Shown here one piece after another: positions 5,098-30,276 of a DNA stretch of 64,000 nucleotides. The stretch is from Epithemia pelagica (taxonomy: Eukaryota; Protista; Bacillariophyta). Below the pieces are notes generated by a model. The model searched no databases. It saw nothing but the letters and a program-made list of their open reading frames with translations, and had not been told where the DNA came from. Position 1 is the stretch's first letter. The number at the start of each line of letters is the position of its first letter. Made by a program: the position numbers and the translations under genes. The DNA is taken from assembly GCA_946965045.2 (NCBI GenBank), contig OX337240.1, forward strand, positions 2,666,001-2,730,000. The letters are read 5' to 3'.

Positions 5098-5275
5098 AAA
5101 ATTGCTATGACGGACCCTCCTGGTATAGTCACATTTTGCCATCTCCATACTCATCAACATTCATCTTCTTCATTTCCTCCACACCTGCTTTAGAGCGCCC
5201 CACTTTTATGGCGTGCAGGACGTACCCAGTCCCCTCAGTCGGGCGGGAAACGTACTCATTGTCCAGCAGCTTTCT

Positions 5276-9256: not shown

Positions 9257-9262
9257 ACTATG

Positions 9263-10690: not shown

Positions 10691-11112
10691 GGTTGCGATT
10701 GTTCTTCTTTTTCGGACTTGTTCGGACTTTCCAGCGAAGTGAGCTTCGTTAGTTTTGGGGGAATTTTCACGTCATGGTCTCAGTTCTACTTGCGAGCGAG
10801 CGGTAGAATCGGAGTTTGAGAGCTTGCATGGTGTGCTAGGACGGCGCACGTCATTTAAGTAATGAACATGTCCGTATAGCTGCATCCTCAACGGCAGGAT
10901 GTTCGGCGCGTCCGCCATTGCCCGGTGTGTGCGCATATGCGGACCACACACCACATTCATCCATCTCGAGCCCCGTTGCAGGCGAGATATTGTTGAGAAG
11001 AATGGGAGTACAGGTATCCAACCTTGGGCAGTCATTCTTCCAAGCGAATGATCTAGATATTTCGCGACCTTCCCAGGCCATGGTGGGTATAGCATCTCAT
11101 TAGTTATTGCAT

Positions 11113-11126
11113 TGGGTCTGATAAAC
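11113..11126 (-). promoter_or_regulatory. Candidate primer-binding site complementary to a tRNA anticodon arm
   Basis: GTTTATCAGACCCA directly follows the 5' LTR; its complement TGGGT-CTGATAA-AC has anticodon-arm geometry. Not checked against host tRNAs. Confidence 0.5.
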
Positions 11127-11239
11127 CAAATTACGATCGTGCGTCTAAGTGAAAAACTGAAATAGTGAGCTCTAAGCTACGCGTCCCGCATGGGTTAGCT
11201 ACTTGCCCAAAATTCGCTTAATATCAGTCGCCTTTCTTG
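11127..11239 (-). repeat. 5' LTR of copia 1
   Basis: Direct repeat of 4977-5089. Confidence 0.92.
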
Positions 11240-12616: not shown

Positions 12617-15010
12617 ATGAAAACGAAGGAAAGAACCTCCTACTCTCGTATGGCTTCCAGAGCCAGTCAACGAAAAAGCAAACGACCATTTCACCGTTTC
12701 TTCCCAAGGAATACATCCTCCTGTTTTCACATTGTATTGTGGTTGTCCGTCCTGCAAGCATGGACAACGTGGCACTTGTACAGTCATGTAGATCTTTTCA
12801 TGAACATGTACCAAATTATCGAAAGAGACGGTTCGTTCTGGTACAACAACAACAACTACCACATTGAGGCGGAGGAACCAGAACAAGGCAATGGTCAGGC
12901 GTGTCGGTACGATGGTCATTGTCCCATTGGAATGACATGCGGTGTGGTGGCCAAACACGACGACCATACGGAAATGCCAGGACAATGTCTTTTCCTGCCC
13001 ATTGTAGACAAGAACAATAAGGAAACGATCGATCGATCATCCCACCACCACCACGACCAAGACCGACTGGACTCTTGTGTTCAGGCCTGTCGCACCGAAT
13101 TGGAATGGGACGAGCACTTTTTTCATGGCACACAACCTCGCATCGTGTCGCATCAGGCCACGTCGTCGCACTCCAGACCGACTGGGTGTATTCTCGACTT
13201 TGTGCGACACTGGCCCGAGGAGGAATCTGCCGACGAGAACCACAACAACACGAATGAGGACGATTGGAAGACGGTGCATGCACACGATACCATGGTACCT
13301 CCCAACGAACCCGAACCCTCCATTGTCGCCTGGGAACAACACCGGTTTCGACATGTCGTACGAGTCGATCCGCTAAGGGTAACAACAACAACAGGAGTAG
13401 TACAATCCACCAATGAGACGGGCAAGAACAGTACCGATTCGACCCACTCAAAGGACAATGACGAACCATTCAAACTGTGGCGTGCCTATTGTTCGGCACC
13501 GTGTCACTCCCACCGTGATTGTAAAACCCAATCCACAATGCACCCGCATTCCTTGTGGTGGAATCCTGACAACGACGATGATGACGACTTATGGAAACAA
13601 CCCTGGCTCTGTGTGCAAGGAGCTTGTCAACGCAATTCGAAATTTTGGGAACCCACGACAAATCTTGTGTTGGACCCAAACGTGACAATCAAGACCAAGG
13701 ATGGCGGTTCTGCTACTTCCCATACCACCAATGAAACAATTCGAGCCATTTTACAGCAACGTCGGAACCAACACCAGTGGAACGAAATGGTGATTGTCAC
13801 GGCTGCCACCAATCCCTATTTTGATGGATTGCGCAATTTGGTTGCCTCGGCACGGTTTTGGGCACCCAATCATGCCGTCGTGATTTACAATTTGCGGGGA
13901 CTGAATCAACCCAATGAAACAGCCGAAGTACTTTCCTGGTCCAATGTCATTGCCATGGAATGGTGGGATAAGGGTATTCCCTCGCACTATCCCCGACATG
14001 TGCACAATGGCAAACAATATGCCTGGAAACCCCTGATTATACAAGAAACCCTGAAGCGGTATGGCATGATTTTTTGGTTGGATGCCGGTTCGACCTTGAC
14101 CGGTCCCATTTCTCCCGTCATTGATATCGTGAAACGGAATGGTCTGTTTTTAGTCAAAGGACAGGACACATCCATGCAAGCCAAATCCCATCCAGAAACA
14201 TATAGATGGTTTGGTTTGGACAAGGAAACCTTTCGGGGCACACAGCAACCTCATTTTTCCGGAAATACCCAAGCCTACCTGGCTCCTTCTCGTTTTGTGG
14301 AATCCATTGTCCAGTGCAATGCAGCGTGTGCGTGGAATGCATCGTGTATTGCTCCTCCAGGATCCACTTTGCGCAATCACCGATACGATCAAACCAGTTT
14401 GTCGCTGTGTGCCTATCATGCCCAAGCACCGCATCATACCGAATATTTGGCGGCCGATCAACGATCGTTGGCATCTAATATTTTGGAGGAAGCTTCCTAT
14501 CGCTTTGTATGGACGGCCCGCAAAAAATGTCGGACCTGTTATACCACGCAGACACAAAATTACTTGGACCGGGGCATTGTTCCCAAAAATTGGACGGCCA
14601 TGGATCCGAGTACGCGCATCTACCGCGTCGGGGCTCGACAAGCACATCATGTCAAAGTGGCCATTCATGGAGGAAACGCTCCTCCTTTGCCACGATTACG
14701 ACCGCAAGGTGTCAAGATCAAAACGTCCAACGGTCAAGGGGAACCAAAACCATTGGAACCTCACACGTTGATTTCCACGTCTGCTCCGACGAAAGCCGTC
14801 CCTGCGACAAACGTAACAAACGAGACGCAAGACATGATGGTGGATCGGAACACATCAAGTGTTCCAAAGACCATGGATGCAAGGAACAGTAGTACCACGG
14901 AGGAGACGATGGATGAAACGGTCACAACACATCCAACAGAGGCTACTATGCAAAGCATTGAAATGCCTAACTTTATATCGCATTCGAACCACCAGAAGAA
15001 TCAGCTGTGA
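12617..15010 (+). CDS. Type II membrane DUF1647-like (GT-A fold) putative glycosyltransferase
   Basis: N-terminal hydrophobic anchor (CFHIVLWLSVLQAWTTWHLY); IVTAATNPYF, VVIYNLRGL, YAWKPLII, WLDAG and HRYDQT motifs; Thr-rich C-terminal tail. Confidence 0.8.
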   Translation: MKTKERTSYSRMASRASQRKSKRPFHRFFPRNTSSCFHIVLWLSVLQAWTTWHLYSHVDLFMNMYQIIERDGSFWYNNNNYHIEAEEPEQGNGQACRYDGHCPIGMTCGVVAKHDDHTEMPGQCLFLPIVDKNNKETIDRSSHHHHDQDRLDSCVQACRTELEWDEHFFHGTQPRIVSHQATSSHSRPTGCILDFVRHWPEEESADENHNNTNEDDWKTVHAHDTMVPPNEPEPSIVAWEQHRFRHVVRVDPLRVTTTTGVVQSTNETGKNSTDSTHSKDNDEPFKLWRAYCSAPCHSHRDCKTQSTMHPHSLWWNPDNDDDDDLWKQPWLCVQGACQRNSKFWEPTTNLVLDPNVTIKTKDGGSATSHTTNETIRAILQQRRNQHQWNEMVIVTAATNPYFDGLRNLVASARFWAPNHAVVIYNLRGLNQPNETAEVLSWSNVIAMEWWDKGIPSHYPRHVHNGKQYAWKPLIIQETLKRYGMIFWLDAGSTLTGPISPVIDIVKRNGLFLVKGQDTSMQAKSHPETYRWFGLDKETFRGTQQPHFSGNTQAYLAPSRFVESIVQCNAACAWNASCIAPPGSTLRNHRYDQTSLSLCAYHAQAPHHTEYLAADQRSLASNILEEASYRFVWTARKKCRTCYTTQTQNYLDRGIVPKNWTAMDPSTRIYRVGARQAHHVKVAIHGGNAPPLPRLRPQGVKIKTSNGQGEPKPLEPHTLISTSAPTKAVPATNVTNETQDMMVDRNTSSVPKTMDARNSSTTEETMDETVTTHPTEATMQSIEMPNFISHSNHQKNQL

Positions 15011-15434
15011 TACAATCCTCGCCTACAACTGAAACGACTATGGAACAACACAGTAGTCCCCAGCGCCAACCAGCAAAGCGATGGAATCACCAAAGTTCGT
15101 CGCAAAGGCAAATCAATACCACCGACGACAAAACAATCGAGAAAAGGATACAACCCAATCATTAGAAAATGACAGTTTTTATTTACAAAGAATGCATACT
15201 CTATAGGAAGCGTCAAGGTTATTGGAAATTTCACCTTCGTGTGAATCCTAAGCCTGAGTAGACCGCGGCGTGTCTGTGCAATCCTTTTCCCGCCAGCAGA
15301 TGTCACAACCAAGCATGGTTATAGCATCTAAGATTAGCTACGGGTTCTAACCTTACCAAAGTCATGTAACGGCGACCGACGGTCAGGCATCGGCCACATG
15401 GTTCGTTGCGAAGTTCCAAAAAAAAGCTACAACC

Positions 15435-16100
15435 ATGGTCCGGTATCAAGCGTACGTGGTGTTTGAAGCGATCCCCGGCTGCGCTCTGGGTGTCTATGAA
15501 AACTGGGACGAGGCACGGCGTGCCACCGAAGGATGGTCGGAAGACCCGCAAGGATTTCGCACCGTCGAAGAGGCTCATCACGTGTGGACAGGAGGTTCAC
15601 CGCAAAACCCCACGAGATTCTACATTGTCCCCACGATATCCGGCGTCGTTCATACTGTGTATTACCGTGCCAAACTTGCGGCTGGTGGTAGGGGAAAGGA
15701 AAAGTATATTCTCAAGTTTCGCACCCGACAGGAAGCAGAAGAGAATCTCGAGAGTCTCGGCATTCAACCCATCCGCGAAGGAGAAGAAGTGGTCGAACAA
15801 GAAGCTCCCATAGAGCACAGTTTTCAGCAGCCCCCGTCCCTCCAAGGAGCTGTTGAAAGAGTTTCGGGAGAGGAGTTTGAAAATGATCATGATGCCCCTG
15901 TTGATCGTGCAGCTGTCAGTTATTTGGCCAATGCAATGACGGAGCGATTCAGTCTCCTCGTGATCACTATTCAGGACCATGAAACCATTTCCAGAATGAG
16001 TGAGTTTCCAGATGACACTCCTGAAGTTGTCTTGCCAGCGGTTGATCGTTACAATGACCCTCAGAACGTTATCGAGAATATGCCACAACAACTTCCGTAG
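15435..16100 (+). CDS. Protein with two RNase H1 N-terminal (hybrid-binding/viroplasmin-like) domains, no catalytic RNase H
   Basis: YVVFEAIPGCALGVYENWDEARRATEG...FRTVEEA and FYIV...KFRTRQEAEENL resemble the YAV..G...GIY..W.E.......F....EA pattern; acidic tail. Confidence 0.6.
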   Translation: MVRYQAYVVFEAIPGCALGVYENWDEARRATEGWSEDPQGFRTVEEAHHVWTGGSPQNPTRFYIVPTISGVVHTVYYRAKLAAGGRGKEKYILKFRTRQEAEENLESLGIQPIREGEEVVEQEAPIEHSFQQPPSLQGAVERVSGEEFENDHDAPVDRAAVSYLANAMTERFSLLVITIQDHETISRMSEFPDDTPEVVLPAVDRYNDPQNVIENMPQQLP

Positions 16101-16475
16101 ATTCAAGACATTTGTGGTATATGGTGCTCAATCAGTGTTGTCTCACAAAGACTATCAAATTTAGAATAGGGCTCACATCGAGTCTAGAAATGGAATGGTA
16201 TCGAAAATCGGATAACTGGTCGATCCTTCAAGTGCTTGTCATTGTATTTGGGCATCATGGATGTCTCGGCTCAATCCCAGTTCAGGGGGCCGGCGATTTC
16301 TGAGGTCGTCGTAGATGCGTGTCCAAACTTCAAGAATAAAGACTCAGTGATAAGTGTGGTGATCATGGTCCTGTACCATGGTCTTCAAACATTGAAATCC
16401 TTGATACTTGACATGTATTGCTAGGAACGGTCCAATCCGAGAGCCACCTCGAAACACTTGGAAACACGTCACAAG

Positions 16476-17101
16476 TAGGCAATGTAGAGGCCCAATCATT
16501 AGTTTCTGGAGAGGAGAGCGAATGTCTCTCCATGTTCTCCTATCGGACTTGTCGTCTCCTCATGGTGGAAATGATCCATCCAATACCCTGCCTTGTCATG
16601 AGTCATGAGATCAGACGAAGAGACGAATGCATGTAAATGCAAATGGTCGAACTAGAGAAGCAACGGCGTGGGTCACAGCGGCATTGTGCCCATGGCGTTT
16701 GGACAAGTTCCTCCAAGTTCCAACCGAAGCAAGGACTTGCTTCCGAATTCCGATTCAACTACCTAGGTATCGTCATCATGGGGCTCATTTGAAGAGATAC
16801 CACTTAGAATGTGTATTAGTTCTCCTTTGTGTACTATGATAGAGAATCGGGATTGGTCACCCAGTCAATTTATCGAATACATATTGGTCTTGCATAATTT
16901 TTCCTCCTGCATCTGCTCCGGATCATCCGTGGCCGCCTTTTGAGGTTGGGAATTGGGAATATGTGGCATGCCGAGAAACGATCGGCCACCGAGACCGAAA
17001 AATTAGGCACGGGCGTTTTCAAAGTGTCGACCGGCGTTTTTGCTTCTAGCTAAAGTTGGCACTCATTCCTGGATCGGACGTTGGAGCCATTCCGTCCATA
17101 T
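16476..17101 (+). repeat. Direct repeat A, copy 1 (626 bp)
   Basis: Matches 25014-25639; two substitutions seen (16774/25312, 16961/25499). Confidence 0.95.
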
Positions 17102-17316
17102 TTACCAGTCCTAAACGAGCGCGTCGTGTCGATGGCGCCAGCACAACATGGATCGGGCGCGCACCTTCCCCCAAAGAATGCGGCGCGGTCGACTCCTACC
17201 CAAGATAGATGAGAGAGAGACAGAGGAGCTCACAATCTTTGGTTTGTGCAGAGTCTCAAGCCATCACACGTTGTGACCAGAAGACTGGATCGTAGCGTAG
17301 ACACCTAAACAAAAAT
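17102..17316 (+). repeat. Direct repeat B, copy 1 (215 bp)
   Basis: Matches 23248-23462 and 24775-24989. Confidence 0.95.
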
Positions 17317-17355
17317 TGTTCGATTGTTGCCTTTGCCTTTGCTTACTTTTTCACT

Positions 17356-20311
17356 ATGACATTCAACGAGAACCCTTTTGACCTCCCTTCCGGTCCCGAC
17401 AAGACGATTCGTCGCTCTGATGCTGATGGTTTAGACCTTCTCGCGGATGTGGTGGAAAAGTCCTCGCTCCCAACCGGGACTACCTCGAAGTCTGCCAAGG
17501 CTGCGCCGCCTTCCATCCCGCCGACGGATAAGGGCGATCCCTTACCCTCTGATGAAGATTCTGCCTCCGTCCATTCGAAGCACCCTCCGAAGAAGAAGTC
17601 GAAGGTTGCGCGCGGGAATGGGATTCCCAAGTCTCCTTCCAATACTGCCAAGGTTACCCAAGATGACTTTGTTGATACCGATACCGATTTTCCGAAGACC
17701 CCAGAGAAAGTTCTAAAGAAGAAGAAGTCGAACCTCAAGAAAGACCCAACCGTTGAGATCCCTCCTTTTGAGACTCCTCCTCAGTTTTATGCTCGGATGA
17801 AGAAAGCCCTCCCTTCCAAGACGTGTTGCAAGTCAGAGTTGTTCTCCTACCCGTTTCCCCTCGACGAGACCGTCAAGTCGAAGTTCGATGCCATTGATAG
17901 CGACTTCTGGTCCGACTCCTTTTGCCGACCTTTCCATTTGACCGTGGAAAGTGATCCCGCTCACTGGGATTCACTTCTCTCCAAGTTTGACGATGTGAAG
18001 ACGCCGGCAGATTTCCAAGCCTTCTTGGAAATCCACTCGAAACGGAATCCTTTAGCCTTCCTTGGCTTTGATCGAAAGAAGAACCCTGTTGTGATTCATA
18101 ACATTTTCGTTTCTCCCGATTCCGGCTCGGTGCTTGCTCCGGACCCAGTTTTCCTTTGCTTTTGCAAAGATTCCCTAGACGTTCCCCCTGGTACATTTGA
18201 CCCAGAAGAACTTGCCTCGATCCTTAACAGCCTCGAATATCTTCGGATCCCATCCTTTGATGAGATTGTTTCTGCGTGCTTGATTAAAGATTCGGACTCC
18301 CTTTCTGGCCTTGCCTTTGATGCTTCCAAGTTTTCCGAGTTCGATCCCTACATTGCTTTTCCGGACAATCTCTCAGACAAGAAGGAAGACATCGAGTTTC
18401 GTTGCAAGCATCGGTTTGATTGTAAGAGTATTGTGTTGCTTCCGCCCTCAATCTCTGGTGAATTAATCAAGTTCTTGGATCCCTCTTGTCACTCGGTGCA
18501 CAAGAAGACCTCATACCCCAAGTTGAACATTCCGAACCTTGTTGCGTTCATCTTCGAAAAAAATTTTGTTGCGTTGGCGACGATCTTTTGAATACCCAAA
18601 CTGCCGTCCCGATTCCATCAAGTTCTCCGTTGAAGACCCACATTGTATTCGTTTTCGAGATACGATCCGTTTCCTTTGGGGAGTCAACCGTGGCAAAGTT
18701 ATCGTTGACGATATCTTCCTTGACCACCCCTCTGATTTCGGTAATGCGATGACAGCCGTCGAATTTTATTTCAAGACCTCTTTACCGGATCGTTTATCTG
18801 CGATGTATTCAACTCGTCGCGGCCCCCGTCCCCCAGCCTCCGAACGTTCTGGAAACTTTTCACCTTCGAAATCTCGACGCCCTATTCATGATGATCCTGT
18901 TGACTCTTCCGGAAATCACGAGTCCGCTGGTTCCCCGAAGATCTCGAAAGATATCTTGTACTTTACTTCACAAATGACCAAATCCATGACTGAGCACATC
19001 TCGAATGCTATGAATGATCGTCAAGACAAATTGACACAGGTGATTACTCAACAGAGCTCGATCATGAAATCTCAAGAAGACCGTCTGGACCACTTCAAAA
19101 CCTTTACAATCGATACGCGCAACGCAATCATCTATGGACAAGTTGGTCCTCATAGCACTTGTCTACCTTCCACTCCAACTGAAAAGGCTAAGGAGATCTT
19201 CAAGCAGAAGAATACGCACAACCTTTATACGACCATCCACTCCCAAGTATTTCGGCGGTCCGATAACACGTGCTTCTTGATCTTCGGCCAAGTGGGAGTT
19301 ATCCAAAAGTATGGACTTCGATGGCGTTCCGAAGAGCATCCTGGTGGATTCTCCCCTTTTTCTTTCGATCCGAATAACCATTCGGGTGCCTCGAATCAAC
19401 TAGCCCTGGATCATGATATCCATCAAGATATCTTCGAGTCTTCCCTTCGTCACTCCAACGGCCTTTCCACGAAAGAAATGAAAGATATCTTTTCGGACGA
19501 CAAGTTATTCTTTCCCTTAACCTCCGACCATTACGGAACTCAACTTCGGAGCTATCTGTGCTTTGCTGACGCCATTTGGGGCTCCGATTCATACATTGTC
19601 TCGAACATTCGAAAGATGTATGACCACCTACTTCGTCATCGTCGCGTGTATGTTGCCAATCAAGCCGATGACAGTTCATTTTTCTCCAGACTCTTGTTTT
19701 CCCTGGATAATTGCGTCCAAAACTTTATTGCTGATAACCTCGAAGATGCGACTTGTATCGAAGATATTTCAGGCGATGCGATTGACTTTCATACGAACAA
19801 ACTCTGTAACAAGATCATGAGCAAAGAGGATATCTGTCGAATGCCGAGATTTTTGAATTCAGCTGTCCAAGCCAAGTACAGGAATCAGAACAATTCCAAC
19901 AGCAATCATAATAACTCGGGTAATGGTAGAGGACGTGGTGGTTCCGATTCTAAACTCCCTGGAAACCCACCCGGACCCCTGCGAGCAAAACGTGGTCGCG
20001 AACATCAATCTAACTCCGTTCCAGATGCTCCAACCCCTGTGAAACCAAACTTCAACTATCCATCAGCTTGGAAACTCCCCTCGGAACTGAAGTACGGGCG
20101 TACCTTCCCTCGCTCTGTTTTGAACGACGTCCCTTCCATCACGGTTGAGGGATCGACTCGCCAATTCTGCGTAAAATTTTTCTGCCTTCAAATTTGTCGT
20201 AGTGGAGAGAAATGTTACTTCTCCCATGCCGATCCTTCACAACATGGGAAGCAAGACGAATTGGATGCATTTTTCAAGCAAGCTTTCGAGAGAGCCCGTA
20301 AGAACTCGTGA
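17356..20311 (+). CDS. YR-element Gag-like ORF1, split by a +1 frameshift at an A7 run (18557-18563)
   Basis: ORFs 17356-18591 and 18539-20311; deleting one A gives ...AFIFEKILLRWRRSFEY... (984 aa). C-terminal C-x8-C-x5-C-x3-H finger CVKFFCLQICRSGEKCYFSH. Confidence 0.8.
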
Positions 20312-23152
20312 CTGATTGTTGGATCGTCGAACACCCTCCTACCGACCTTTGTTCCGCCGCCCAAGATCACCCCCAATACAATCAATGATCCCCTGGCCCC
20401 ACTCCTCCCTTTCGGCGATCCTACCCTCTCTTCATCTTCTGACCCTCCAAACCCTTCCCACGATTTCCTCAAGACCATCCCAAAAGTTCCAGTGCCCTCT
20501 CCTTTAACTTCCATCGATCCATCCCTTCCGATTGACCCAGGATTGTTACTACCCCCAAAGATCCTCGACCCTCCCCAACAGACACCAGCGTCCATTGACC
20601 CCTTCTCCTCATCACAACCTCTCCCTATGCCTTTGTCCAAGTCGATTTCCTTTGCTCCAACTTCCGAACTTTTCCCTTTTGACCCAATCGTAGCCCCTTC
20701 CTGTCGCTTGGATGGCCAAGACGACACACCCCCCCTCAAGATTGACACTGAGACCCCACCGCCCCTTACTGATGACCATTCCCTTTCCGATCCTCTCCTT
20801 CCGGTCAATCAGAATCTTCTTTCCTCCGTCCGCCGAGCTGCCGACGAATCTAGCCTTCCTCCTTCAATCCTCTCCCTTCGGAAGCAACCCTCTACCATCG
20901 ATCCCTCCCTCCCAGGACATGCCACTCCAAACATTACGACCAACACGTCAGGAAAACCGTTGGAACGTAACTTGCTTCGACTTCAAAACTCGTTAGTTGA
21001 GAATCAAGCAATCATTGGTAAGTCCATTTCCTCTTCCTTTCCTCCATACCTTTCCAATTCGATCGAAGATCACTTCCCTTCACCGATTACAATCCCTCCC
21101 CTACCACCTCCATCCCATCCATTGAACATCGATACAATCCTTTCCGTCTTTCACTCGACCGTCCCAACCCCGAAAGCATCACCGTTTATTCACGAACGAT
21201 CCGTAGCAGCTGCCGCAGCCAACTCTGTGTTAATTGCAAAGTATGATCACGACCTCCAAGCCCTTTTCGACGCCCACCCCGGAACAACGATAAGTCCAGG
21301 CTCGGAATTTCGACCCCCATCGATACTCAAACCGCTTCTTTTCGGTCACCCATTTTGGCCGAAGATAGAACATGACTTAACATTTGGAGCCACGTACCAG
21401 TTCCGCGATGACCTTCCAGGTGATGATGCTCGAGTCGCCGAGAACGAAGCATTAATCGCTTACGGAAATCACAGCTCCGCCCGCAAACGACCTGCAGCGT
21501 TGATCAAAGTGTCTCAAAAAGACACGGTTCATGGTTGGGCTTTCCCCTTAACTTTTGACTGCGCTCGAAAAATTAAGGGAGGACGATTTGCCCCACTCGG
21601 GGTCGCTCAGCACAACGGAATCACCGAGCGCGGCGAGATCATCGTAAAAGACCGCCTTGCACATGATCAAACGTTTTCAACCGGATTAGCACCCTCCCTC
21701 AACCTTGCCGTTGACGACAGCGATGACATTGATCTGGTATACGGTTGGTGTCTTGAGAGATTGATTCACCAAATCGTAGCACTTCGACTTGAATTCCCTC
21801 GTACACGGATACTCGTTTGTAAGTTCGACTGGGGAGCGGCGTACCGACGTATAAACGGCGATGGACTCCTCGCTGCGAATGCCTTGACAACCGACGCGTC
21901 TGGTGAATTTGCTAATATTCTTAGCAGACTGTCATTTGGCGGCAAGACACATCCCGCAATGTTCAGCTTGTTCTCGGAAACAGCTTGCGACCTGTGCAAC
22001 GACCTCATCGAATTTAAGGAGTGGAATCCATCGATCTGCTACTCCCCCCTCCAGAAACTGATGGGCCCACCAAACCGCCTACCCGAAGATATCCCTTTCG
22101 AACAAGGGAAACCGTTGATTGTTGATATACCTGCAAGACCAGATGGCTCAGTGGACGTATATCTCGACGATATGGTCCAACTCTTCGCCGACGAAGAGGA
22201 CATTGTCTCAAGAACGAGTGCCGTGGTGCCGCTAGTACTCCACCTTTTCATCCGACCCTGTCAACCCGATAAAGAACCAATCAAACGAACGGACATACTG
22301 GCCGAGGACAAGATGATGGCCGAAGGAAGTCCCAGTGAAGTTATGAGAGTCTTGGGCTGGGAACTTGACACACGACGTCTCCTATTGATACTTCCCATTG
22401 ACAAGTACTTAAATTGGTCCAAAGCCGTGCGACATTTGGCTGACCCGAAGACGCGAAAGACAAAATTCCGTGACCTCGAGACGACGGTCGGTAAATTGAT
22501 ACATTCCAGCAAGGGTATCCCCCTGGCGCGATTCTTCCTCCAGCGTACGCGGACGTACATGGAAAACTTGATCAAGCAATTCGACGACAAACAAAGATCA
22601 GCGGCCGACGAAAGTGACGACGACGACGACCAATCCTCCATCTCAAGCTCCGGCACAGTTGGCTCCGACGGCGACCAAACAGTCCCACAACGAAGCAGCG
22701 ACGCACGCTTCCGACCCAAACCTTGGTTCCGCTACGCCGTCCCCGAATATGTCAAAGAAGACATGACAGTCTGGATAGATCTACTCGAACGAGCGCACCA
22801 AGGCGTCAACTTGAACCTCCTTACTTGCCGCAGACCCACAAATATTCTGCTGGCAGACGCATGCCCCTTGGGAATGGGCGGGTACTCGATAAAATCCGGC
22901 ATAGCCTGGCAAGTACCGCTGGACCCGAGTGTTTACGAGATGGCAGGACACGCGGACGACCTCGACATAGACCCAACACTTTCATCGACGACCGATCTCA
23001 AACTGTCCAACAATCTTTTTGAGTATATTGCGCAAGTCGTAACCATATGGCTCGAGCAACATCATGGTGACATAGAAGACTTGGGTGTTGGGAGCCATCT
23101 CGGTTCCCTCTGGGCCTTTACGGCAAACTTGCGACTACTCCTCCCAAACTAG
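20312..23152 (+). CDS. pol: YR-element Pol (Pro-rich linker, RT, truncated RNase H)
   Basis: KDRLAHD, DWGAAYRRI, RLSFGG, VYLDD, LGWELDT; RNase H start LADACPLGMGG...NNLFEY, then switches into repeat C at 23084. Frame is open from 20312. Confidence 0.85.
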   Translation: MIVGSSNTLLPTFVPPPKITPNTINDPLAPLLPFGDPTLSSSSDPPNPSHDFLKTIPKVPVPSPLTSIDPSLPIDPGLLLPPKILDPPQQTPASIDPFSSSQPLPMPLSKSISFAPTSELFPFDPIVAPSCRLDGQDDTPPLKIDTETPPPLTDDHSLSDPLLPVNQNLLSSVRRAADESSLPPSILSLRKQPSTIDPSLPGHATPNITTNTSGKPLERNLLRLQNSLVENQAIIGKSISSSFPPYLSNSIEDHFPSPITIPPLPPPSHPLNIDTILSVFHSTVPTPKASPFIHERSVAAAAANSVLIAKYDHDLQALFDAHPGTTISPGSEFRPPSILKPLLFGHPFWPKIEHDLTFGATYQFRDDLPGDDARVAENEALIAYGNHSSARKRPAALIKVSQKDTVHGWAFPLTFDCARKIKGGRFAPLGVAQHNGITERGEIIVKDRLAHDQTFSTGLAPSLNLAVDDSDDIDLVYGWCLERLIHQIVALRLEFPRTRILVCKFDWGAAYRRINGDGLLAANALTTDASGEFANILSRLSFGGKTHPAMFSLFSETACDLCNDLIEFKEWNPSICYSPLQKLMGPPNRLPEDIPFEQGKPLIVDIPARPDGSVDVYLDDMVQLFADEEDIVSRTSAVVPLVLHLFIRPCQPDKEPIKRTDILAEDKMMAEGSPSEVMRVLGWELDTRRLLLILPIDKYLNWSKAVRHLADPKTRKTKFRDLETTVGKLIHSSKGIPLARFFLQRTRTYMENLIKQFDDKQRSAADESDDDDDQSSISSSGTVGSDGDQTVPQRSSDARFRPKPWFRYAVPEYVKEDMTVWIDLLERAHQGVNLNLLTCRRPTNILLADACPLGMGGYSIKSGIAWQVPLDPSVYEMAGHADDLDIDPTLSSTTDLKLSNNLFEYIAQVVTIWLEQHHGDIEDLGVGSHLGSLWAFTANLRLLLPN

Positions 23153-23462
23153 TAGTCTAGCAAAGATGCCTAACCGTCTAAGCTACAGACTTGGTCGCCC
23201 TAAGAACAAAGCGCCGTCAGGATGGGTTCGTTGGGTACCACCCATCGTTACCAGTCCTAAACGAGCGCGTCGTGTCGATGGCGCCAGCACAACATGGATC
23301 GGGCGCGCACCTTCCCCCAAAGAATGCGGCGCGGTCGACTCCTACCCAAGATAGATGAGAGAGAGACAGAGGAGCTCACAATCTTTGGTTTGTGCAGAGT
23401 CTCAAGCCATCACACGTTGTGACCAGAAGACTGGATCGTAGCGTAGACACCTAAACAAAAAT
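23084..23462 (+). repeat. Internal C+B block, copy 1 (379 bp)
   Basis: Matches 24611-24989 (one G/C difference seen in B); C = 23084-23247, B = 23248-23462. Confidence 0.95.
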
Positions 23463-23464
23463 AG

Positions 23465-24553
23465 AAGGGATGGAAGAACCTGGACCCACCAGAGCAACGG
23501 GAAAAGGCAGTCACCCCAAGACACTTGGTCCATTTATGGAAACAAGCATGTACACCGAAACCCAACACCGCCGACTCCACCTTGACGGCGCCACAAGCGA
23601 CATCAAACACCGAGAACAAGGAACAGGTATTCACCGACAAGACAACCAAACAGCCCCAATACGAAACATCATCATTCAGAGCCTGTAACGCCGACCTCCT
23701 CTGCGGAGGATACTTCTACGCAACACGGAGTTGCGAGATCTCCACAGTCAAACAACGAGGAAAGACGAAGATGCTGACGATGGCAAACGTGGTGTTCGGC
23801 CGATGCGATGCAACCCGCTCCCGCATCGACCCTCGCGACCCCAACTTTTACGACGAAGCATATTATGTCTCCATAACGTTCATCGCGCAAAAACACGACA
23901 TCCCTCATGAGACGCGGACGCAAAGCAAGACAGAGGATCCCATCCTTTGCCCCGTCCGAATTTGGGGACGAATCCTGCGACGCATCTTCCACCACCAGCC
24001 AAACGCGCCTCCAGACACGCCGGTGAATTGTTGGTTTCCTCCCCCAACAGCCAAAAACCCAAACCCACCACCGAGATTCATCCGCGCCGAAGACAGTCTC
24101 AAGCTCCTCCGCGAGACGTGCACTGACCCATCCACACAAGAACCGTTGTTCGGATACCAACCAAGCGAAATCGGCACACATTCCATCCGATCCGGGGCGG
24201 CAATGGCCCTCTTCCTTTCGCCCGGCATCTCCGTATTGCGCATCATGATACTCGGCCGATGGCAATCAGCCGCGTTTATGCGGTACATTCGACCACAAGT
24301 AATGGAGTGGACGGCGGGCATGTCCATCGCCATGCTCAATACGCCAGACTTCAGACACGCCGACCCAACAGGCGTTCCCAATACCACCAACAAGACCAGT
24401 GAAACATCGAAAGATACGAAAAATTTAAAACTCTCCGACATCGAAGCGATCCAACAGAACCTTGAATTCGCCATCGACTCGCCCGAGGAACTAACATTCA
24501 ATGGCTCCGTGACCACTGCTTCCTTCGACCTTCAACTTAACTTGGAATTCTAA
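23465..24553 (+). pseudogene. Tyrosine recombinase, 5'-truncated (catalytic domain retained)
   Basis: Frame opens right after the CB block as KGWKNLDPPEQREKAVTP; catalytic FYATRSCE (R), QKHD (K), HSIRSG (HxxR), GRWQS...RY (W,Y). No N-terminal binding domain and no upstream ATG. Confidence 0.85.
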
Positions 24554-24610
24554 ACGATGGACCGAAGATACCTTGAGGTTCCGAGCGGAAGGCAATGTCA
24601 AAGATTCAAT

Positions 24611-24989
24611 GGTGTTGGGAGCCATCTCGGTTCCCTCTGGGCCTTTACGGCAAACTTGCGACTACTCCTCCCAAACTAGTAGTCTAGCAAAGATGCCTAA
24701 CCGTCTAAGCTACAGACTTGGTCGCCCTAAGAACAAAGCGCCGTCAGGATGGGTTCGTTGGGTACCACCCATCGTTACCAGTCCTAAACGAGCGCGTCGT
24801 GTCGATGGCGCCAGCACAACATGGATCGGGCGCGCACCTTCCCCCAAAGAATGCGGCGCGGTCCACTCCTACCCAAGATAGATGAGAGAGAGACAGAGGA
24901 GCTCACAATCTTTGGTTTGTGCAGAGTCTCAAGCCATCACACGTTGTGACCAGAAGACTGGATCGTAGCGTAGACACCTAAACAAAAAT
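24611..24989 (+). repeat. C+B block, copy 2
   Basis: Direct repeat of 23084-23462; followed by a 24-bp unique spacer (24990-25013). Confidence 0.95.
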
Positions 24990-25013
24990 AACCCCATACC
25001 CGCCCTTGGGAGC

Positions 25014-25639
25014 TAGGCAATGTAGAGGCCCAATCATTAGTTTCTGGAGAGGAGAGCGAATGTCTCTCCATGTTCTCCTATCGGACTTGTCGTCTCCTCA
25101 TGGTGGAAATGATCCATCCAATACCCTGCCTTGTCATGAGTCATGAGATCAGACGAAGAGACGAATGCATGTAAATGCAAATGGTCGAACTAGAGAAGCA
25201 ACGGCGTGGGTCACAGCGGCATTGTGCCCATGGCGTTTGGACAAGTTCCTCCAAGTTCCAACCGAAGCAAGGACTTGCTTCCGAATTCCGATTCAACTAC
25301 CTAGGTATCGTTATCATGGGGCTCATTTGAAGAGATACCACTTAGAATGTGTATTAGTTCTCCTTTGTGTACTATGATAGAGAATCGGGATTGGTCACCC
25401 AGTCAATTTATCGAATACATATTGGTCTTGCATAATTTTTCCTCCTGCATCTGCTCCGGATCATCCGTGGCCGCCTTTTGAGGTTGGGAATTGGGAATGT
25501 GTGGCATGCCGAGAAACGATCGGCCACCGAGACCGAAAAATTAGGCACGGGCGTTTTCAAAGTGTCGACCGGCGTTTTTGCTTCTAGCTAAAGTTGGCAC
25601 TCATTCCTGGATCGGACGTTGGAGCCATTCCGTCCATAT
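25014..25639 (+). repeat. Direct repeat A, copy 2
   Basis: Direct repeat of 16476-17101. Confidence 0.95.
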
Positions 25640-26222
25640 AGAGAATGCCGACTCGCGTGTGGCGGCTCACCGTTTCGGTTGGCCGACGGAAGGAAGGAGT
25701 CCAACCACCAGAAATTCAAACGCAGCAATCACATAACGTCGTGCTCTTGTAGGACTGCCCCTGTTGTGTGTGTAAACAAAAGATTGAGTTGTTTTGAAAA
25801 ACCAACACAAGAACACATTCCTTGGTCTCTATCGTGACAACTGGACTGCAACAAAGCTTTCTGGGGCTGGTGCTGGATACCCAAGTTGTCAAAGAACGAC
25901 TTGAAAATTGCAGCGTGACATTATTTCATCAGTCTCTGGAAACAAACCAGTGCACTTTCCCAGGACCACACTGGTTGTCAAGGAAGATCGATTCCGTTGC
26001 GTCTATCTTGTGTGATTTCACCAATCTTTCGTTGGCACATTGCAAGATTGATTCCGAGACCGTTGCTTCCAAGATTTGTCAAGGTTAAAAGACTTTTTTT
26101 TGGATACTCCGACGTGCAACACGCTATATAGTTCCTAGGATTGAACAAAAGTGTGACACTGCTTCCTTCCAAACCTGTCACAGACGCTGGGAAGAAAAAC
26201 TCACGACTTGAACTCTGTAAGA

Positions 26223-28877
26223 ATGGACTCACCAGCTGCCAAAACGAGCGGTGATAACAATTCCAACAACACCAGTCCTTCGCCGGCTCATTCTCCTTCG
26301 CAGACCATCAGTATGCCTTCGAACAACAACAATGGCACTGGCGCACCTCCAAGCCCCATGACCAATGCCTTGTTGGTGTCCTCGCCGTACAAGTTGGTGC
26401 CTCCACCGCGCGAATCGGACTGGAATCCATGGCGGATGGATTCTCAAAAGACGCAATTGAATCAAGCCCTCTTGCAAGCCCTTCAAGACTCGGACTTGCA
26501 CGATGTCTTTTTGGTGGCGAAGGATGGCGATCAAATTCCCGCCTCTCGCTTTGTCTTGGCCTCTCGGTCACCCGTCTTGAAGCGCATGCTCTATGGAAGT
26601 TTCCGAGAAGCCAAATCGTCCACGATTTGTATGATGGGCTATGAAAGTGCCATTTTGCGCGGTGTGGTTCATTATTGTCAAACAAGTCAAATGCCCGTCC
26701 TGGAAGGTCCGGAAGAACAGGGCGGTGTCAAGAACACGCAAGCCACTGGAGATTTGGAGTCTTTGGTCCGTCAACAAGTGCGATTGTATCAGGCGGCCGA
26801 CTTTTTGGAACTGGATGAGTTGGGAAACTTGGTGCATTTTGAGATTCGTCGTTTGACTGGATTGTATCCTGGATTGGCCTGTGTGGTCTTTGATGAAGTG
26901 GAAGATGTGGGCAGCCGCATTGGTGAATACGCTCGATTGATGATGGAAGTTCGTCCCTATGTGTCCTTGGGTGCTGGAACACGCCTCATTGCCAACCCGG
27001 TTACCACTTCCTCGGATGCAGCGACCGGCGCTTCGCCCAAAAAGATTGACTCGGACGACGACTCCAACGAATCTATGGGAGGTGTCGAATGTATGCGTGC
27101 CGAACGCTTGCAAATTTTGTTACAGAGTGAGAATCTCATGTGCGGAGAACTCTTTTTATTTCAAATGCTAAGGCAATGGTACGATCATAAAATCACCTAT
27201 CTCGGAAACAACGTAAACGAGTCGACGGAATACGAAAAAGAAGCCTCCTCCTTATTGGAAGCCACTCAAAACTGCGCCAAGTGCCTCAATATGGAGAACA
27301 TTGAACCCTCGGCCTTGCTTCAAATTGTCCAGCCCTGTCCCTTTATTCATCCCACCTTTATGTACGAAGCCTTTGCCAAACAAGCGCTCCGTGCCTCGCA
27401 ACAACGTGTCTGGTCCTTGCATAGCCGTCCCGCCAAGTACCAAACCGTCGAACGCGTCTTGGTGGAAGATTGCGGATCGCGACAAGTTCGCGGTATGTAT
27501 GTGCGCATGGTCTCGGGTCTCAAAAAGACACATGGAGCCCTTTACACGAAACGCGAAATTGTCGCTGGACAACCCATGGTGTACACCCTCTCCTGCTCGT
27601 TGGTTCATCAACCAGCGGCTCAATCCAAGTATAGCCAAAACCAAGACGGGAGCGGAGCCGAAGACGTTCCACCTGGACAAGAAGTGGTGGAATGCCGCAT
27701 CTTTTGTTCTCCTCTCTTGACCCCTCACGCCATTCCCACCTTGTTTCAGTACTATTCCAACTCGGCCTACGTCGATCCGCTCTTTCAGCCCATTTTGCAA
27801 ATTGTTGCCGTCAAACACTCCAGCAGCAACAAGCGTACCCGAACCGTGGTGGTTTCCGATGGCCATTATTGCATGCAAGCATCCTTGGCGAATAATTTGG
27901 CCATTCACAATTCCAAGGATATTCAAATCTATGGTGTCGTCCAAGTATTGGCCTTTCGGTTGAATCAGTCCAGTGGCAGCAGCAACAGTAGCACAAGCTC
28001 CAACATACCGAGTCGCAGCAGCTCGAGTCCCAAGTTGCACATTCAACGCGTGTCCATTGTCAACTCCAATGCCGGACAAGTGTTTGGACGACCCACCTTT
28101 TTCCGCGGTCCGCCCAAACAAGAATTGTCACCCCAAAAGGATATTCATTCCATTGCTGAAGAAACGGACGATGGCGACTCGCATCACCCTTTGGATACAG
28201 ACGATGTGGACGATCATCCTCCGCCGCATCACCATTATCATCACGATGGCGACGATGCCTCCACTACCTACGCCGGTCATCATCACGCCGTTGTCAAGGA
28301 TTTGAAGCATATTACTATTGTGTACTCCTGCAGTTATCCCCTCAAGAAACAAAACCCCAATGGGTCACCCGAAATGCGCATTCCCCGATTGGGATGGCAA
28401 GTGGAAGAAGCTGGCCAACATCCGCCTCCGACCTGTACGTGGTTTCCGGCCATGCCAGCATCGGCCTCCAGCAGTCCGGCTGTGGGTGCCATGCGAGGTC
28501 TAGCCATCTCCTTGAAAGCCTTTGCCGCCAGCAACCCCCATGCCGGAACCGGTGGAGGAGAAGCCCAATCGACTTCTTCGACGCCGTCCCGAAGTGTTGT
28601 GTCGAGGTCGAACAGCAGCACGACGACGGGACACTCGTTGTTGAGCTTGTCCACCACAACGACGGTTCCCAAGAATTTGGGATCCATCCTCAAGTATGAA
28701 GATGACGAAGACCACGAGTTTTTGCCCCATGACGACGATGTCTTGGACGATGTCGAACGGCGTAAACTGCCCCATCCCGTAGTCTCCAACAACAATGACG
28801 ACGATTCCGACGAAGAATTGTCCTCGACCCTCCAGAACCTTCGATTGCCCCAACAACAAGCGCGAGAAGACGAGTAA
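26223..28877 (+). CDS. BTB/POZ (BACK-like) protein with RPA70 N-terminal-like OB fold
   Basis: BTB: DVFLVAKDGDQIPASRFVLASRSPVLKRMLYGSFREA. OB fold: PILQIVAVK...VVSDGHYCMQASLA...QVFGRP. Ser/His/Asp-rich tail. First ATG at 26223. Confidence 0.85.
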   Translation: MDSPAAKTSGDNNSNNTSPSPAHSPSQTISMPSNNNNGTGAPPSPMTNALLVSSPYKLVPPPRESDWNPWRMDSQKTQLNQALLQALQDSDLHDVFLVAKDGDQIPASRFVLASRSPVLKRMLYGSFREAKSSTICMMGYESAILRGVVHYCQTSQMPVLEGPEEQGGVKNTQATGDLESLVRQQVRLYQAADFLELDELGNLVHFEIRRLTGLYPGLACVVFDEVEDVGSRIGEYARLMMEVRPYVSLGAGTRLIANPVTTSSDAATGASPKKIDSDDDSNESMGGVECMRAERLQILLQSENLMCGELFLFQMLRQWYDHKITYLGNNVNESTEYEKEASSLLEATQNCAKCLNMENIEPSALLQIVQPCPFIHPTFMYEAFAKQALRASQQRVWSLHSRPAKYQTVERVLVEDCGSRQVRGMYVRMVSGLKKTHGALYTKREIVAGQPMVYTLSCSLVHQPAAQSKYSQNQDGSGAEDVPPGQEVVECRIFCSPLLTPHAIPTLFQYYSNSAYVDPLFQPILQIVAVKHSSSNKRTRTVVVSDGHYCMQASLANNLAIHNSKDIQIYGVVQVLAFRLNQSSGSSNSSTSSNIPSRSSSSPKLHIQRVSIVNSNAGQVFGRPTFFRGPPKQELSPQKDIHSIAEETDDGDSHHPLDTDDVDDHPPPHHHYHHDGDDASTTYAGHHHAVVKDLKHITIVYSCSYPLKKQNPNGSPEMRIPRLGWQVEEAGQHPPPTCTWFPAMPASASSSPAVGAMRGLAISLKAFAASNPHAGTGGGEAQSTSSTPSRSVVSRSNSSTTTGHSLLSLSTTTTVPKNLGSILKYEDDEDHEFLPHDDDVLDDVERRKLPHPVVSNNNDDDSDEELSSTLQNLRLPQQQAREDE

Positions 28878-29565
28878 AACGACGTCCTAAGTCTTGAGTT
28901 ATGCACAAGGGACTCCCCAGAGATGGTAGCCAGAGTTGCTCCATCCAGCGCTGCTGATTTGTGAGGGCTAATATATTTCACTTGCGCATTTTCATTGTCC
29001 AATTTGTAACCGTCCTAGTATAACTGAATTCCTTTTCGACATGATTGAGTGTTGTGGTTGTATAGGACAATCTTCTTATGATCTAGAGGATGGGAATTTT
29101 CTCTTGTTTCTTGAACGCTTCACATCAAAATTTCAAATTTTCGGAATGTCGTGTCCTCGACTCCCGATCGATTGGATTGGTTGAGTCCATTATCCGAATC
29201 AATGTGAAATACAGTCCTCGCGTTAGGTTTTTGGGCTTAAGATCAAAAGGATACCTTCTGCGCATGTCACGAAAACTTACATATGCCCAACTGAGTCGGA
29301 TCAAGACCAAAACATTTTCTGTGGAGTTCTCCTTGGGCGGGAGCGGGAAAATTCAGACCAGCGAGTTTCATTCGCTCACATTTTTCAAAGGGTCTATTGT
29401 CTCACTGAAAAAACAAGGAGGACACAGACGGCGTTTACCAACCATGAAGTCAATTGTCAACCTTGTAATAATAGCTGCTTTCGCTCTCTTGTTTCCGGTC
29501 AAAGGCTAACACTTTTCCTCTCTCCCACCTCTTACGTGCTCACTTTTTGCTGATACCTCGGTGTC

Positions 29566-30276
29566 TTGTATTTCATTCGACGCTTCCTGGAATGTGATTT
29601 CTTTGATGTGTTCAATGAAGACCGCACCCGTGTGACGACAGCCCGCGGTGAATGTGCTGCAGAAATTGTTCTGCTGGATTTCATCTGGAACATAATTATC
29701 TCTGACAACTTTGGAAGAGCTGGGTTCCTCGATGGGCCTCCTCGTCGTTGTTGCGATTCCGACGTGAGCATCAAAGTTTGTCCTAGATTGAACAAGCTGA
29801 AAACCCGGCGCGCTCCATTGAGTCATTTGCGGTGGACCCTGTCAAAAGATGAGGTTCCTGTGGAGTTACAACAGCAGGGTGTCACACCACAGGACTGGTC
29901 TGAGACATGGAGTGCCATGAATCAACTATTTGAGAAAGCGTGCGAGGAAGCACAATCACAACGGTTAGCGATTGACCGGACATCCACTATTCTGGCAAAG
30001 GTTCTATTGAAGCAGAAAACGACCTGGGAAGACCTTGTCAAGGCCCAAAGTGAAAAATACTATCGATCCAAGATTTCTGTTCTGGTTCTAGTTGGTTATC
30101 AAACCCTAATAGAAATTCCCAAAGACACAAGCAAATGCAGAGCGCTTTGCCGTCGTTGTTTTGGTGGTCCTGTGAAAGACAGGGCAGTGTCAGTACCTTG
30201 CGGTTTGGAATTTCGCCCGGTCAAGTGGAAAGAGTATATCGCAAAATGTTTCGGTGACCCTGCTGCTACTGAGTAA
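29566..30276 (+). CDS. Hypothetical protein (likely needs an upstream exon); weak Erf4/GOLGA7-like segment
   Basis: 236-codon open frame with a TTG start; VPVELQQQGVTPQDWSETWSAMNQLF loosely resembles Erf4-family helix. A signal-peptide-like exon MKSIVNLVIIAAFALLF starts at about 29443. Confidence 0.45.
   Translation: MYFIRRFLECDFFDVFNEDRTRVTTARGECAAEIVLLDFIWNIIISDNFGRAGFLDGPPRRCCDSDVSIKVCPRLNKLKTRRAPLSHLRWTLSKDEVPVELQQQGVTPQDWSETWSAMNQLFEKACEEAQSQRLAIDRTSTILAKVLLKQKTTWEDLVKAQSEKYYRSKISVLVLVGYQTLIEIPKDTSKCRALCRRCFGGPVKDRAVSVPCGLEFRPVKWKEYIAKCFGDPAATE

Follow-up and report, generated by a model that had tools for sequence, protein, structure and literature searches.

The retrotransposon located at 17102-25013 of the window, i.e., the whole 64,000-nucleotide stretch of DNA analysed here, is very probably one defective and rearranged copy of an ordinary split-direct-repeat tyrosine-recombinase (YR) retrotransposon, lying between two copies of the same 626 bp of host intergenic DNA. 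The family is hosted by a pennate diatom and follows the Ngaro-type pattern, an assignment made by repeat layout, encoded enzymes and insertion without target-site duplication rather than by a phylogeny of the reverse transcriptase and RNase H (RT/RH). The full layout in the window (A1–B1–ORFs–[C-B]–YR–[C-B]–x–8 nt of C–A2; Table 1) is a one-off outcome of damage and host duplication and, since a damaged ordinary element sits between duplicated host DNA, there is no new transposon architecture at this locus. The window repeats were mapped by self-BLAST, in which they lay far above chance (E = 0 to 1e-110), and the element was compared with other loci of the same long-read diatom assembly, namely a sister copy (L010), a homologous locus without the element (L009) and further copies of the family.

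Table 1. Features of the rearranged element and of the duplicated host DNA on either side of it (window coordinates).
Feature	Position	Strand	Remarks
A1, left host duplicate, outside the retrotransposon	16476..17101	+	624/626 identical to A2; once in L009; not in the seven other element copies
B1, left terminal repeat of the element ('A1' in Ngaro nomenclature)	17102..17315	+	starts at the canonical terminus TTACCAG
gag-like ORF with C-terminal CCCH-type zinc knuckle	17356..20311	+	split into 17356-18591 and 18539-20311
Predicted reverse transcriptase and N-terminal part of putative RNase H-like domain	20492..23083	+	YLDD motif, predicted fold
Extra internal C-B unit (C 23088-23247, B 23248-23461)	23084..23463	+	equals L010 14269-14648, 1 substitution
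Predicted tyrosine recombinase, catalytic domain intact (ORF 23525-24553)	23464..24553	+	equals L010 from 13121; R…K…HxxR…W…Y motifs
Canonical internal C1-B2 pair (C 24615-24774, B 24775-24988)	24611..24988	+	position and sequence as L010 14273-14647
x, 17-nt spacer separating B2 from the terminal C repeat	24989..25005	+	near-invariant in the family
C2 remnant, first 8 nt of the terminal C repeat	25006..25013	+	L010 has full C2 here
A2, right host duplicate	25014..25639	+	runs into the right flank as in L009

The sister copy L010 is 99% identical to the window element and presents the layout B1–[gag-like, RT-RH, YR]–C1-B2–x–C2, in which the recombinase ORF overlaps the RT/RNase H-like ORF. This is the Ngaro/PAT pattern A1…B1A2B2, and it is common to four more distant copies, L003, L007, L008 and L006, the last of which carries an insertion. 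The original prediction had placed the window layout outside the Ngaro/PAT models, a claim that these copies contradict. Window positions 17099-23085 correspond to 6474-12462 of L010, 23084-23463 to 14269-14648, and 23463-25013 to 13121-14671. L010 and six other copies end in TTACCAG… and …CCCATCG beside unrelated DNA, and repeat A is absent from all seven. No target-site duplication was found in L003, L008 and L010, in each of which the DNA on either side can be read and has no duplicated bases in common; the window copy, with its 626-bp duplication, is the exception to this mode of insertion.

Repeat B is present three times in the window (17102-17315/6, 23248-23462 and 24775-24988/9), B1 being identical to the B at 23248-23461 and differing by 1 nt from that at 24775-24988. 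The 215-bp B previously noticed just inside A1 and near the right end was thus correctly located, whereas the third copy, at 23248-23462, had been overlooked. The first bases of B1 recur beside unrelated flanks in L002, L003, L006, L008, L010 and L011. Additionally, a 380-bp C+B unit occurs twice (23084-23463 and 24611-24990, with 379/380 positions identical), flanking the recombinase ORF, and the C1-B2 pair contains the joined-termini sequence …CCCATCG|TTACCAG…. A short stretch does part B from A2, as had been described for a 24-bp spacer, but it is not unique, since 24989-25013 consists of the 17-nt x followed by the first 8 nt of C, a string also found in L010, L003, L007 and L008. Spacer x is nearly invariant across L003, L006, L007, L008 and L010, despite proteins that share only 52-77% identity with their window counterparts. 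By analogy with DIRS/Ngaro models, the most likely replication scheme of the intact family is one in which an RNA copy would be reverse-transcribed, the internal C1|B2 junction would serve as the template bridging both ends into a circle, and the recombinase would open this circle at C|B and then insert it without target-site duplication.

In the window copy, the left terminus is exact, and the terminal C repeat stops at 8 nt, with ~152 nt missing: at the right junction, the window runs from nt 8 of C2 into the start of A, whereas L010 carries on with the full C2. Homology to intact copies also breaks off at 23083-23087, and the extra C-B unit, whose junctions show 2-nt and 1-nt microhomology, stands in place of 658 bp of coding sequence present in L010. 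This replacement removes the C-terminus of the putative RNase H-like domain and the first ~120 residues of the 483-aa recombinase, which constitute its N-terminal domain. In addition, the gag-like ORF is split by a 1-nt insertion at 18557, an extra A in comparison with L010 and L011. Cut in C2, deprived of these 658 bp and frameshifted in the gag-like ORF, the window copy is therefore dead.

In L010, L003, L006, L007 and L008, one uninterrupted ORF of 981-1029 aa encodes the gag-like protein, whose Pfam matches are weak and sub-threshold, just to Torus and CCCH zinc fingers. The following ORF encodes a reverse transcriptase, as its modelled fold confirms: the AlphaFold model (pLDDT 70) has as best Foldseek matches the CaMV, HIV-1, MMLV and Ty3 reverse transcriptases, with probability 1.0. 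The adjoining RNase H-like domain is suggested by a D/E/D/H-N-D motif pattern and by its position, and Pfam and PDB sequence searches gave no match to RNase H. The ~290 residues past this part are low-complexity and overlap the recombinase ORF, and the RT/RH profile matches about 12,000 sequence clusters in public data. The recombinase motifs are conserved in 44 homologues, and the full-length L010 protein is modelled with a fold like that of Cre (E 1.7e-6, probability 1.0), which confirms a Cre-like recombinase; Pfam PF00589 did not match it. In the pol ORF of L010 and in eight relatives, Pfam matched no domain at all and thus no methyltransferase, a silence that constitutes weak evidence because Pfam misses all domains of this lineage.

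As had been predicted, a 626-bp repeat A is found at both ends, its two copies differing by 2 nt (0.32%). The homologous locus L009, without the element, contains A once (8681-9316), continuous with both flanks, and on either side its sequence runs collinear with that of the window, 95-99% identical. Divergence between the window and L009 reaches 8%, with 8 indels, in A and 3-4.7% in the flanks and, taking L009 as reference, both differences between A1 and A2 are changes on A2. Since A is single in L009 and far more diverged there than between A1 and A2, it represents recently duplicated host DNA; the two loci had therefore split long before A was duplicated, and L009, with its single A, shows the ancestral state. 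This element-free comparison involves one homologous locus, which could be either the allele of this locus or a copy of homeologous or segmental origin. An empty site reading CACAAG-TAG-AGAATG, without A, had been predicted, but the one found holds A once. Of the two hypotheses initially advanced, that of a B…B-x element within a 626-bp duplication of host DNA was right as to the duplication but not as to the design, the element being a truncated, internally rearranged Ngaro-type copy. The other, a new replication design with LTR-like outer repeats and a TAG core, fails because standard-layout copies exist and A is host DNA in L009.

Accordingly, it is scarcely credible that A could be the LTR-like terminal repeat of a new element type integrating at TAG, with the A of L009 as a solo repeat derived from A1 × A2 recombination. 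A near-identical direct repeat does flank the element, and element loss by such recombination would likewise leave a single A; however, the A of L009 is no solo derivative of the young duplication, because it is 8% diverged versus 0.3% between A1 and A2. Furthermore, the element ends on the right in a truncated C repeat, and the TAG triplets, although literally there at both boundaries, have no significance: the left one is the first 3 nt of A, also begins A2 and reads TTG in L009, and the right one combines the final T of A with AG from the flank, a sequence that L009 carries as uninterrupted host DNA. An LTR identity of A was thus rejected on its absence from the seven other copies, its status as single host DNA at L009 and the lack of any short duplication outside A when its flanks were compared with L009. 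The odd arrangement could also come from the assembly, a collapse or mis-join having made A…A and C-B…C-B, which we consider very improbable. The layout was read from assembled sequence alone, and the element is repetitive in the genome, with at least three copies ≥97% identical; however, the window contig measures 1.41 Mb in an assembly with Mb-scale contigs, the repeats of 626, 380 and 215 bp are far shorter than long reads, and the paired repeat copies carry private SNPs. Overlap-based mis-joining is also implausible because the odd junctions share just 0-2 nt of homology.

With regard to the origin of the 626-bp duplication, one aberrant insertion at staggered breaks is favoured, and we give it about an even chance. 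A linear unit-length molecule, or a broken circle, spanning the start of B to x+8 would have been joined to two breaks staggered by 626 bp, and A would then have been duplicated by gap filling. This proposal is based on a single copy, and we know of no precedent for staggered-break insertion among tyrosine-recombinase elements. It is conceivable, though rather unlikely, that the window copy is a fossil of the natural linear replication intermediate of the family, captured by host repair at staggered breaks. In that case, the cDNA would extend from the first B base to 8 nt beyond x, would have been neither circularised nor inserted by the recombinase, and x+8 would be the point where the internal C1|B2 junction would normally serve to bridge the ends. 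If this were true, the window copy would mark the replication-intermediate ends of split-direct-repeat elements, and the borders of the extra C-B unit would suggest a discrete, strong-stop-like C-B DNA, which would link Ngaro-type replication mechanistically to LTR-type reverse transcription. The main alternative to a single aberrant insertion is a later secondary rearrangement. A two-step origin of this kind, which we regard as doubtful, would begin with a normal recombinase insertion where A meets the right flank. An illegitimate exchange, through end-joining of two breaks or break-induced replication, would later have joined C2 position 8 to the left border of the A carried by a homologue that lacked the element but was otherwise near-identical. 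At the left junction, the terminus is exactly canonical, as normal insertion would leave it, and the host …CCATAT preceding it faintly resembles the C end …CCATCG, which could reflect the use of a pseudo-site; moreover, one non-homologous join would suffice to explain why C2 is lost and why A occurs a second time. However, an element-free partner ~100% identical in A would be needed, and the sole homologous locus seen, L009, is too diverged there, while a sister-chromatid exchange would put a second element after A2, where none is found. The internal C-B rearrangement would also be left unexplained, as a further independent event. Finally, an extrachromosomal circle composed of A and the truncated element, generated by illegitimate excision or from a read-in transcript beginning at the left border of A, could have integrated by homologous recombination through A at an element-free locus. 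Recombination of A plus B1-to-x+8 with a genomic A would yield exactly A–element–A with both outer flanks native, as seen, but this route is improbable, as it takes three steps, each without independent evidence: the element would first have inserted canonically at this very site, an unusual excision or 5' read-in would have followed, and the product would then have re-integrated into a copy of that locus lacking the element.

This diatom contains several Ngaro-type subfamilies, and Pfam recognises none of their gag-like, RT/RH and recombinase proteins. Therefore, domain-based pipelines miss such elements, which represents an annotation blind spot in diatom and marine-protist genomes. In addition, the near-invariant 17-nt spacer and repeat ends across diverged subfamilies point to cis-acting replication sites. 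To our knowledge, the replication mechanism of split-direct-repeat elements has never been studied experimentally. The window copy, whose left end is exact, whose right end lies 8 nt inside the terminal repeat and which is bordered by a 626-bp duplication of the target, is a rare natural 'accident', and further copies of this sort, if collected, could inform on replication intermediates.

Long target duplications at staggered breaks are known from paired nicks, some T-DNA insertions and endonuclease-independent LINE insertions. The window insert resembles such captures in its blunt, microhomology-free junctions between two copies of the target segment, although 626 bp is very long and the mechanism proposed here comes from one copy. 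A formal likeness to LTR retrotransposons is also found, since the intact element as a circle would read C-B – internal region – C-B – x, formally a two-LTR circle with C-B as the LTR, opened where C meets B, and the extra internal C-B unit of the window behaves as a discrete LTR-sized piece. In contrast to those elements, the family is without integrase and without a 4-6-bp target-site duplication, no TG…CA ends, tRNA primer-binding site or polypurine tract were recognised in the element, and the outer 626-bp repeat of the window is host DNA. With DIRS-1-like elements, the family shares reverse transcriptase, RNase H-like and tyrosine recombinase functions, as predicted, and an internal sequence duplicating the joined termini. 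However, DIRS-1 has inverted terminal repeats and an internal complementary region, whereas the inverted repeats of the window element and L010 have just 18-30-nt arms, 70-86% complementary, at chance level and never at the termini, and a DIRS-1-like identity was rejected for lack of inverted terminal repeats in both.

A methyltransferase domain is the defining feature of PAT-like elements (PMC4157794); none was detected in the family by Pfam, which is blind to this lineage. PAT-like and TOC elements have in common with the family the split direct repeats and an internal junction that would template end joining, but some PAT-like elements place their repeats differently relative to the ORFs. 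Ngaro elements, the split-direct-repeat YR retrotransposons that have no methyltransferase, reportedly described by Goodwin and Poulter in 2004, constitute the closest pattern. Their layout is A1-[ORFs]-B1A2B2 (PMC8547959, PMC6681497, PMC4157794). Unlike the proteins of Cafeteria Ngaro elements, the three proteins of the diatom family are missed by PF00078, PF17919 and PF00589; the family also has a conserved 17-nt spacer between A2 and B2 and a very long gag-like ORF (~1000 aa), and the window copy has lost the terminal repeat and gained a further repeat unit internally. On the other hand, L010, L003, L007 and L008 have one left-end repeat and a B1-A2-B2 triplet downstream of the recombinase gene, and the family agrees with Ngaro elements in its insertion without target-site duplication and in its ORF order of gag-like, RT/RNase H and recombinase.

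Comparison of the region with itself resolved the window element into a series of direct repeats and open reading frames (ORFs), in which B1 lies directly inside A1 and is followed by the two halves of the gag-like ORF, the ORF carrying the YLDD motif, a C-B unit, the recombinase ORF, a second C-B unit, 24 nt and A2. The 626-bp direct repeat A that the original prediction placed at both ends is indeed present, with 624 of 626 positions identical between the copies. Repeat B, expected in two copies, was also found just inside the left A at the expected length of ~215 bp, but a third copy exists. The second and third B are each directly preceded by a repeat C of 158-160 bp, together forming the C-B unit, whose two copies differ by one mismatch and flank the recombinase ORF. 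The 24 nt before A2 had been described as a unique spacer; they consist of the conserved spacer x and the first 8 nt of C2, the terminal C repeat, and are therefore not unique.

Features of the window element (window positions) and of its intact sister copy L010 (positions in L010)
Copy	Feature	Position	Remarks
Window	A1	16476-17101	626 bp
Window	B1	starts 17102	~215 bp
Window	ORF	17356-18591	first of two halves of gag-like ORF
Window	ORF	18539-20311	second of two halves of gag-like ORF
Window	ORF	20492-23152	YLDD motif inside
Window	C-B unit	23084-23463	380 bp; B starts 23248
Window	ORF	23525-24553	recombinase, motifs HSIRSG…GRWQS…Y
Window	C-B unit	24611-24990	380 bp; B starts 24775
Window	spacer x	24989-25005	17 nt
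Window	A2	25014-25639	626 bp
L010	B1	6477-6690	
L010	gag-like ORF		single, 984 aa
L010	RT/RNase H-like ORF		1189 aa
L010	recombinase ORF		483 aa, overlaps RT/RNase H-like ORF
L010	C1	14273-14432	
L010	B2	14433-14647	
L010	spacer x	14648-14663 (as listed)	17 nt, between B2 and C2
L010	C2	14664-14823	

Protein searches for relatives of the YLDD ORF led to many contigs of assembly ERZ21939226, where the window contig is the 1.41-Mb ctg1347l, and the 90%-identity cluster of this ORF holds two further members. One copy, L010 on ctg1301l, matches the window element at ~99% identity, with 61 substitutions over 5985 bp and a further 14 over 1550 bp, and is intact, with gag-like, RT/RNase H-like and recombinase ORFs. 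Its layout is that of split direct repeats, A1-[ORFs]-B1A2B2 in the general notation, the hallmark of Ngaro-type (and PAT/VIPER-type) elements (PMC8547959, PMC6681497, PMC4157794), and the same layout was observed in L003, L006, L007 and L008, more distant copies with proteins 52-77% identical. Thus, the terminal layout that had been thought to fit neither DIRS nor Ngaro/PAT models belongs to an element whose sister copy has the standard Ngaro-type one. All copies begin with TTACCAG… beside unrelated DNA, and wherever the right end is visible it reads …CCCATCG, again beside unrelated DNA and without target-site duplication, while the internal C1|B2 border equals both termini joined together. 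No target-site consensus was found among seven left and three right flanks, some left flanks faintly resembling the C end. L002, which has a left repeat and no recognisable right repeats, was left out of the layout comparison, and the sequence of L011 ends after about 5.1 kb. L006 additionally carries a ~5.6-kb insertion (12470-18143) between its RT/RH and recombinase genes and a ~1.5-kb insertion with a ~20-bp tandem array (19349-20904) inside its B2 repeat.

The 17-nt spacer x reads TAACCCC[A/C]TACCCGCCC and recurs in L003 (14490-14506), L006, L007, L008 and L010. Like the C|B junction and ~45 nt at the start of C, it is nearly invariant across subfamilies whose proteins are as divergent as stated above from those of the window copy, which suggests that x, the repeat ends and this junction act in cis in replication or recombination. 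That x and the beginning of C bind a tRNA primer, or that the C end resembles a tRNA, was considered and rejected, as inspection by eye revealed no convincing complementarity to tRNA 3' ends. In the metagenome contigs scanned, the x–C motif had no match and the C|B junction motif matched one high-GC contig (L012), which is otherwise dissimilar; this match is therefore due to chance.

None of the window element ORFs matched Pfam at E values up to 10, and neither did the intact L010 ORFs or distant relatives (P0002-P0026 and P0159-P0241 among the lineage set). Sequence searches of the PDB with the RT-RH profile, with the recombinase as single sequence and profile, and with the RNase H-like segment returned nothing meaningful. 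The predicted structure of the YLDD ORF (mean pLDDT 70) resembled known reverse transcriptases (CaMV, HIV-1, MMLV and Ty3; probability 1.0), by which the model identifies it as one. Likewise, the model of the full-length L010 recombinase (pLDDT 77) matched Cre over both domains (E 1.7e-6), marking it as a predicted Cre-like tyrosine recombinase; the residues R, K, HxxR, W and Y are shared across 44 homologues, and Epithemia proteins are among its relatives. A housekeeping protein of assembly ERZ21939226 likewise has its nearest counterparts in the diatoms Epithemia clementina (51%), Phaeodactylum (36%) and Mayamaea (34%), so that the host is a pennate diatom, neither human nor pathogenic to people, crops or animals. 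In public data the RT/RH profile matched 12,120 clusters at 50% identity, 1,638 of them at E ≤ 1e-30. The lineage is thus large yet unannotated, and domain-based annotation will miss it.

Exact-protein look-ups of the two genes flanking the window element returned only the window's own contig, and the homologous locus L009 was reached via the 90%-identity clusters of both flanking host proteins, each of which has a second member on ctg1362l. This one locus, used for the empty-site comparison, aligns collinearly with the window on either side of the element (3537-4978 at 99.2%, 11239-15288 at 97.1% and 25016-31942 at 96.7%), and its left flank, a single A (8681-9316) and its right flank are continuous, the retrotransposon being absent. 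Between the A of L009 and A1 or A2 there are 8% substitutions and eight indels, compared with 3-4.7% in the neighbouring flanks and only 0.32% between A1 and A2. These values rule out that the single A is a solo repeat left by recombination between A1 and A2; A was therefore duplicated long after the two loci had separated, and a single copy is the ancestral state. Nothing resembling A was found in the other copies compared (L010, L003, L006, L007 and L008).

Of the two hypotheses originally offered, an element with LTR-like outer repeats and integration at a TAG core is refuted, since A is single host DNA in L009 and absent from other copies, whereas an element sitting in a 626-bp duplication of host DNA is supported by L009, which carries A once and continuous with its flanks. 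The TAG at both boundaries lost its significance as well: the left one is where A begins, and L009 has TTG there; the right one consists of the last T of A and AG of the flank, where L009 reads uninterrupted host sequence. The unusual layout is an individual accident and not a design.

The window contains further features of note. A Copia-type LTR retrotransposon at 4977-11240, whose LTRs measure 114 bp and whose target duplication is the 5-bp GGGAG, has a clean empty site in L009, so that the two loci differ by at least two retrotransposon insertions. A second Copia-type element (41229-47440) has 285-bp LTRs 99.3% identical and a minus-strand ORF of 1708 aa (41804-46930) with gag_pre-integrs, Pol_BBD, SH3_retrovirus and RVT_2 domains. 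A ~160-bp direct repeat (2106-2263 and 14153-14318; 89% identity) has one copy inside a DUF1647-domain gene (12617-15010). Just upstream of A1, a 221-aa ORF (15435-16100) weakly matches the RNase H1 N-terminal (Cauli_VI) domain; the matching stretch of L009 has a 1.9-kb extra segment and a longer called gene (288-aa).

In L010 coordinates, the window element runs from 6477 to 12462, then from 14269 to 14648, and then from 13121 to 14671, where it stops. A complete C-B unit stands in place of 658 bp (L010 12463-13120), with 2-nt and 1-nt microhomologies at its joins. Its borders lie no more than 2-4 nt away from where C starts and 0-1 nt away from where B ends, and it looks as if C-B had been present as a separate DNA piece while the element replicated. 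A nested copy reduced to a solo remnant was rejected as its source, because the repeats of such a copy would recombine to B-x-C or B-…-C, never C-B. By its D…H…N..D pattern in L010, the missing segment appears to encode the C-terminal part of the RNase H-like domain, and it also encodes the first ~120 recombinase residues, modelled as helices in the N-terminal domain. Additionally, the gag-like ORF is broken into two halves by one inserted nucleotide at 18557, which neither L010 nor L011 has. The window copy cannot be autonomous.

On the basis of this anatomy and of the DIRS/Ngaro replication models summarised elsewhere (PMC7192593, PMC8547959), an intact member of the family would be transcribed and then reverse transcribed, the internal C1|B2 junction would bridge both ends to give a circle, and recombinase crossover at the C|B junction would insert this circle with no duplication of the target. 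The origin of the window copy must account for an exact left end (17102) joined to the right end of A, and for a right end only 8 nt into C2 (TTGGGAGC) that abuts the left end of A without microhomology, both joins being blunt. The two A copies would have been identical when formed. We prefer a single aberrant insertion, a reading that we hold about as probable as all else: a linear molecule or broken circle, extending from the B start to x plus 8 nt and already carrying the internal template-switch rearrangement, would have been joined at two single-strand breaks separated by 626 bp, with fill-in duplicating A.

An insertion of the normal kind and, after it, an illegitimate exchange with a homologue lacking the element could also be envisaged; this origin seems rather improbable, and is weakened by the 8% difference in A of the sole homologue seen, L009. 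Less probable still is that a circle which had acquired A integrated by homologous recombination. An assembly artefact is unlikely, considering that the copies differ by private SNPs and that the junctions lack homology. Returning to the single aberrant insertion, it is a doubtful but conceivable extension, resting on one copy, that the window element keeps the ends of a natural linear intermediate, with C-B as a discrete LTR-like unit.

A literature search for described diatom YR retrotransposons yielded only passing mentions. Judged by layout and gene content, the family is putatively Ngaro-type. The DIRS-1 layout is excluded. A PAT-type element needs a methyltransferase, none of which was detected, a weak negative given that Pfam is blind to this lineage. 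The circle proposed for the family would formally match the two-LTR circle of LTR retrotransposons, in which C-B would be the 'LTR' and x would sit where the two LTRs meet.
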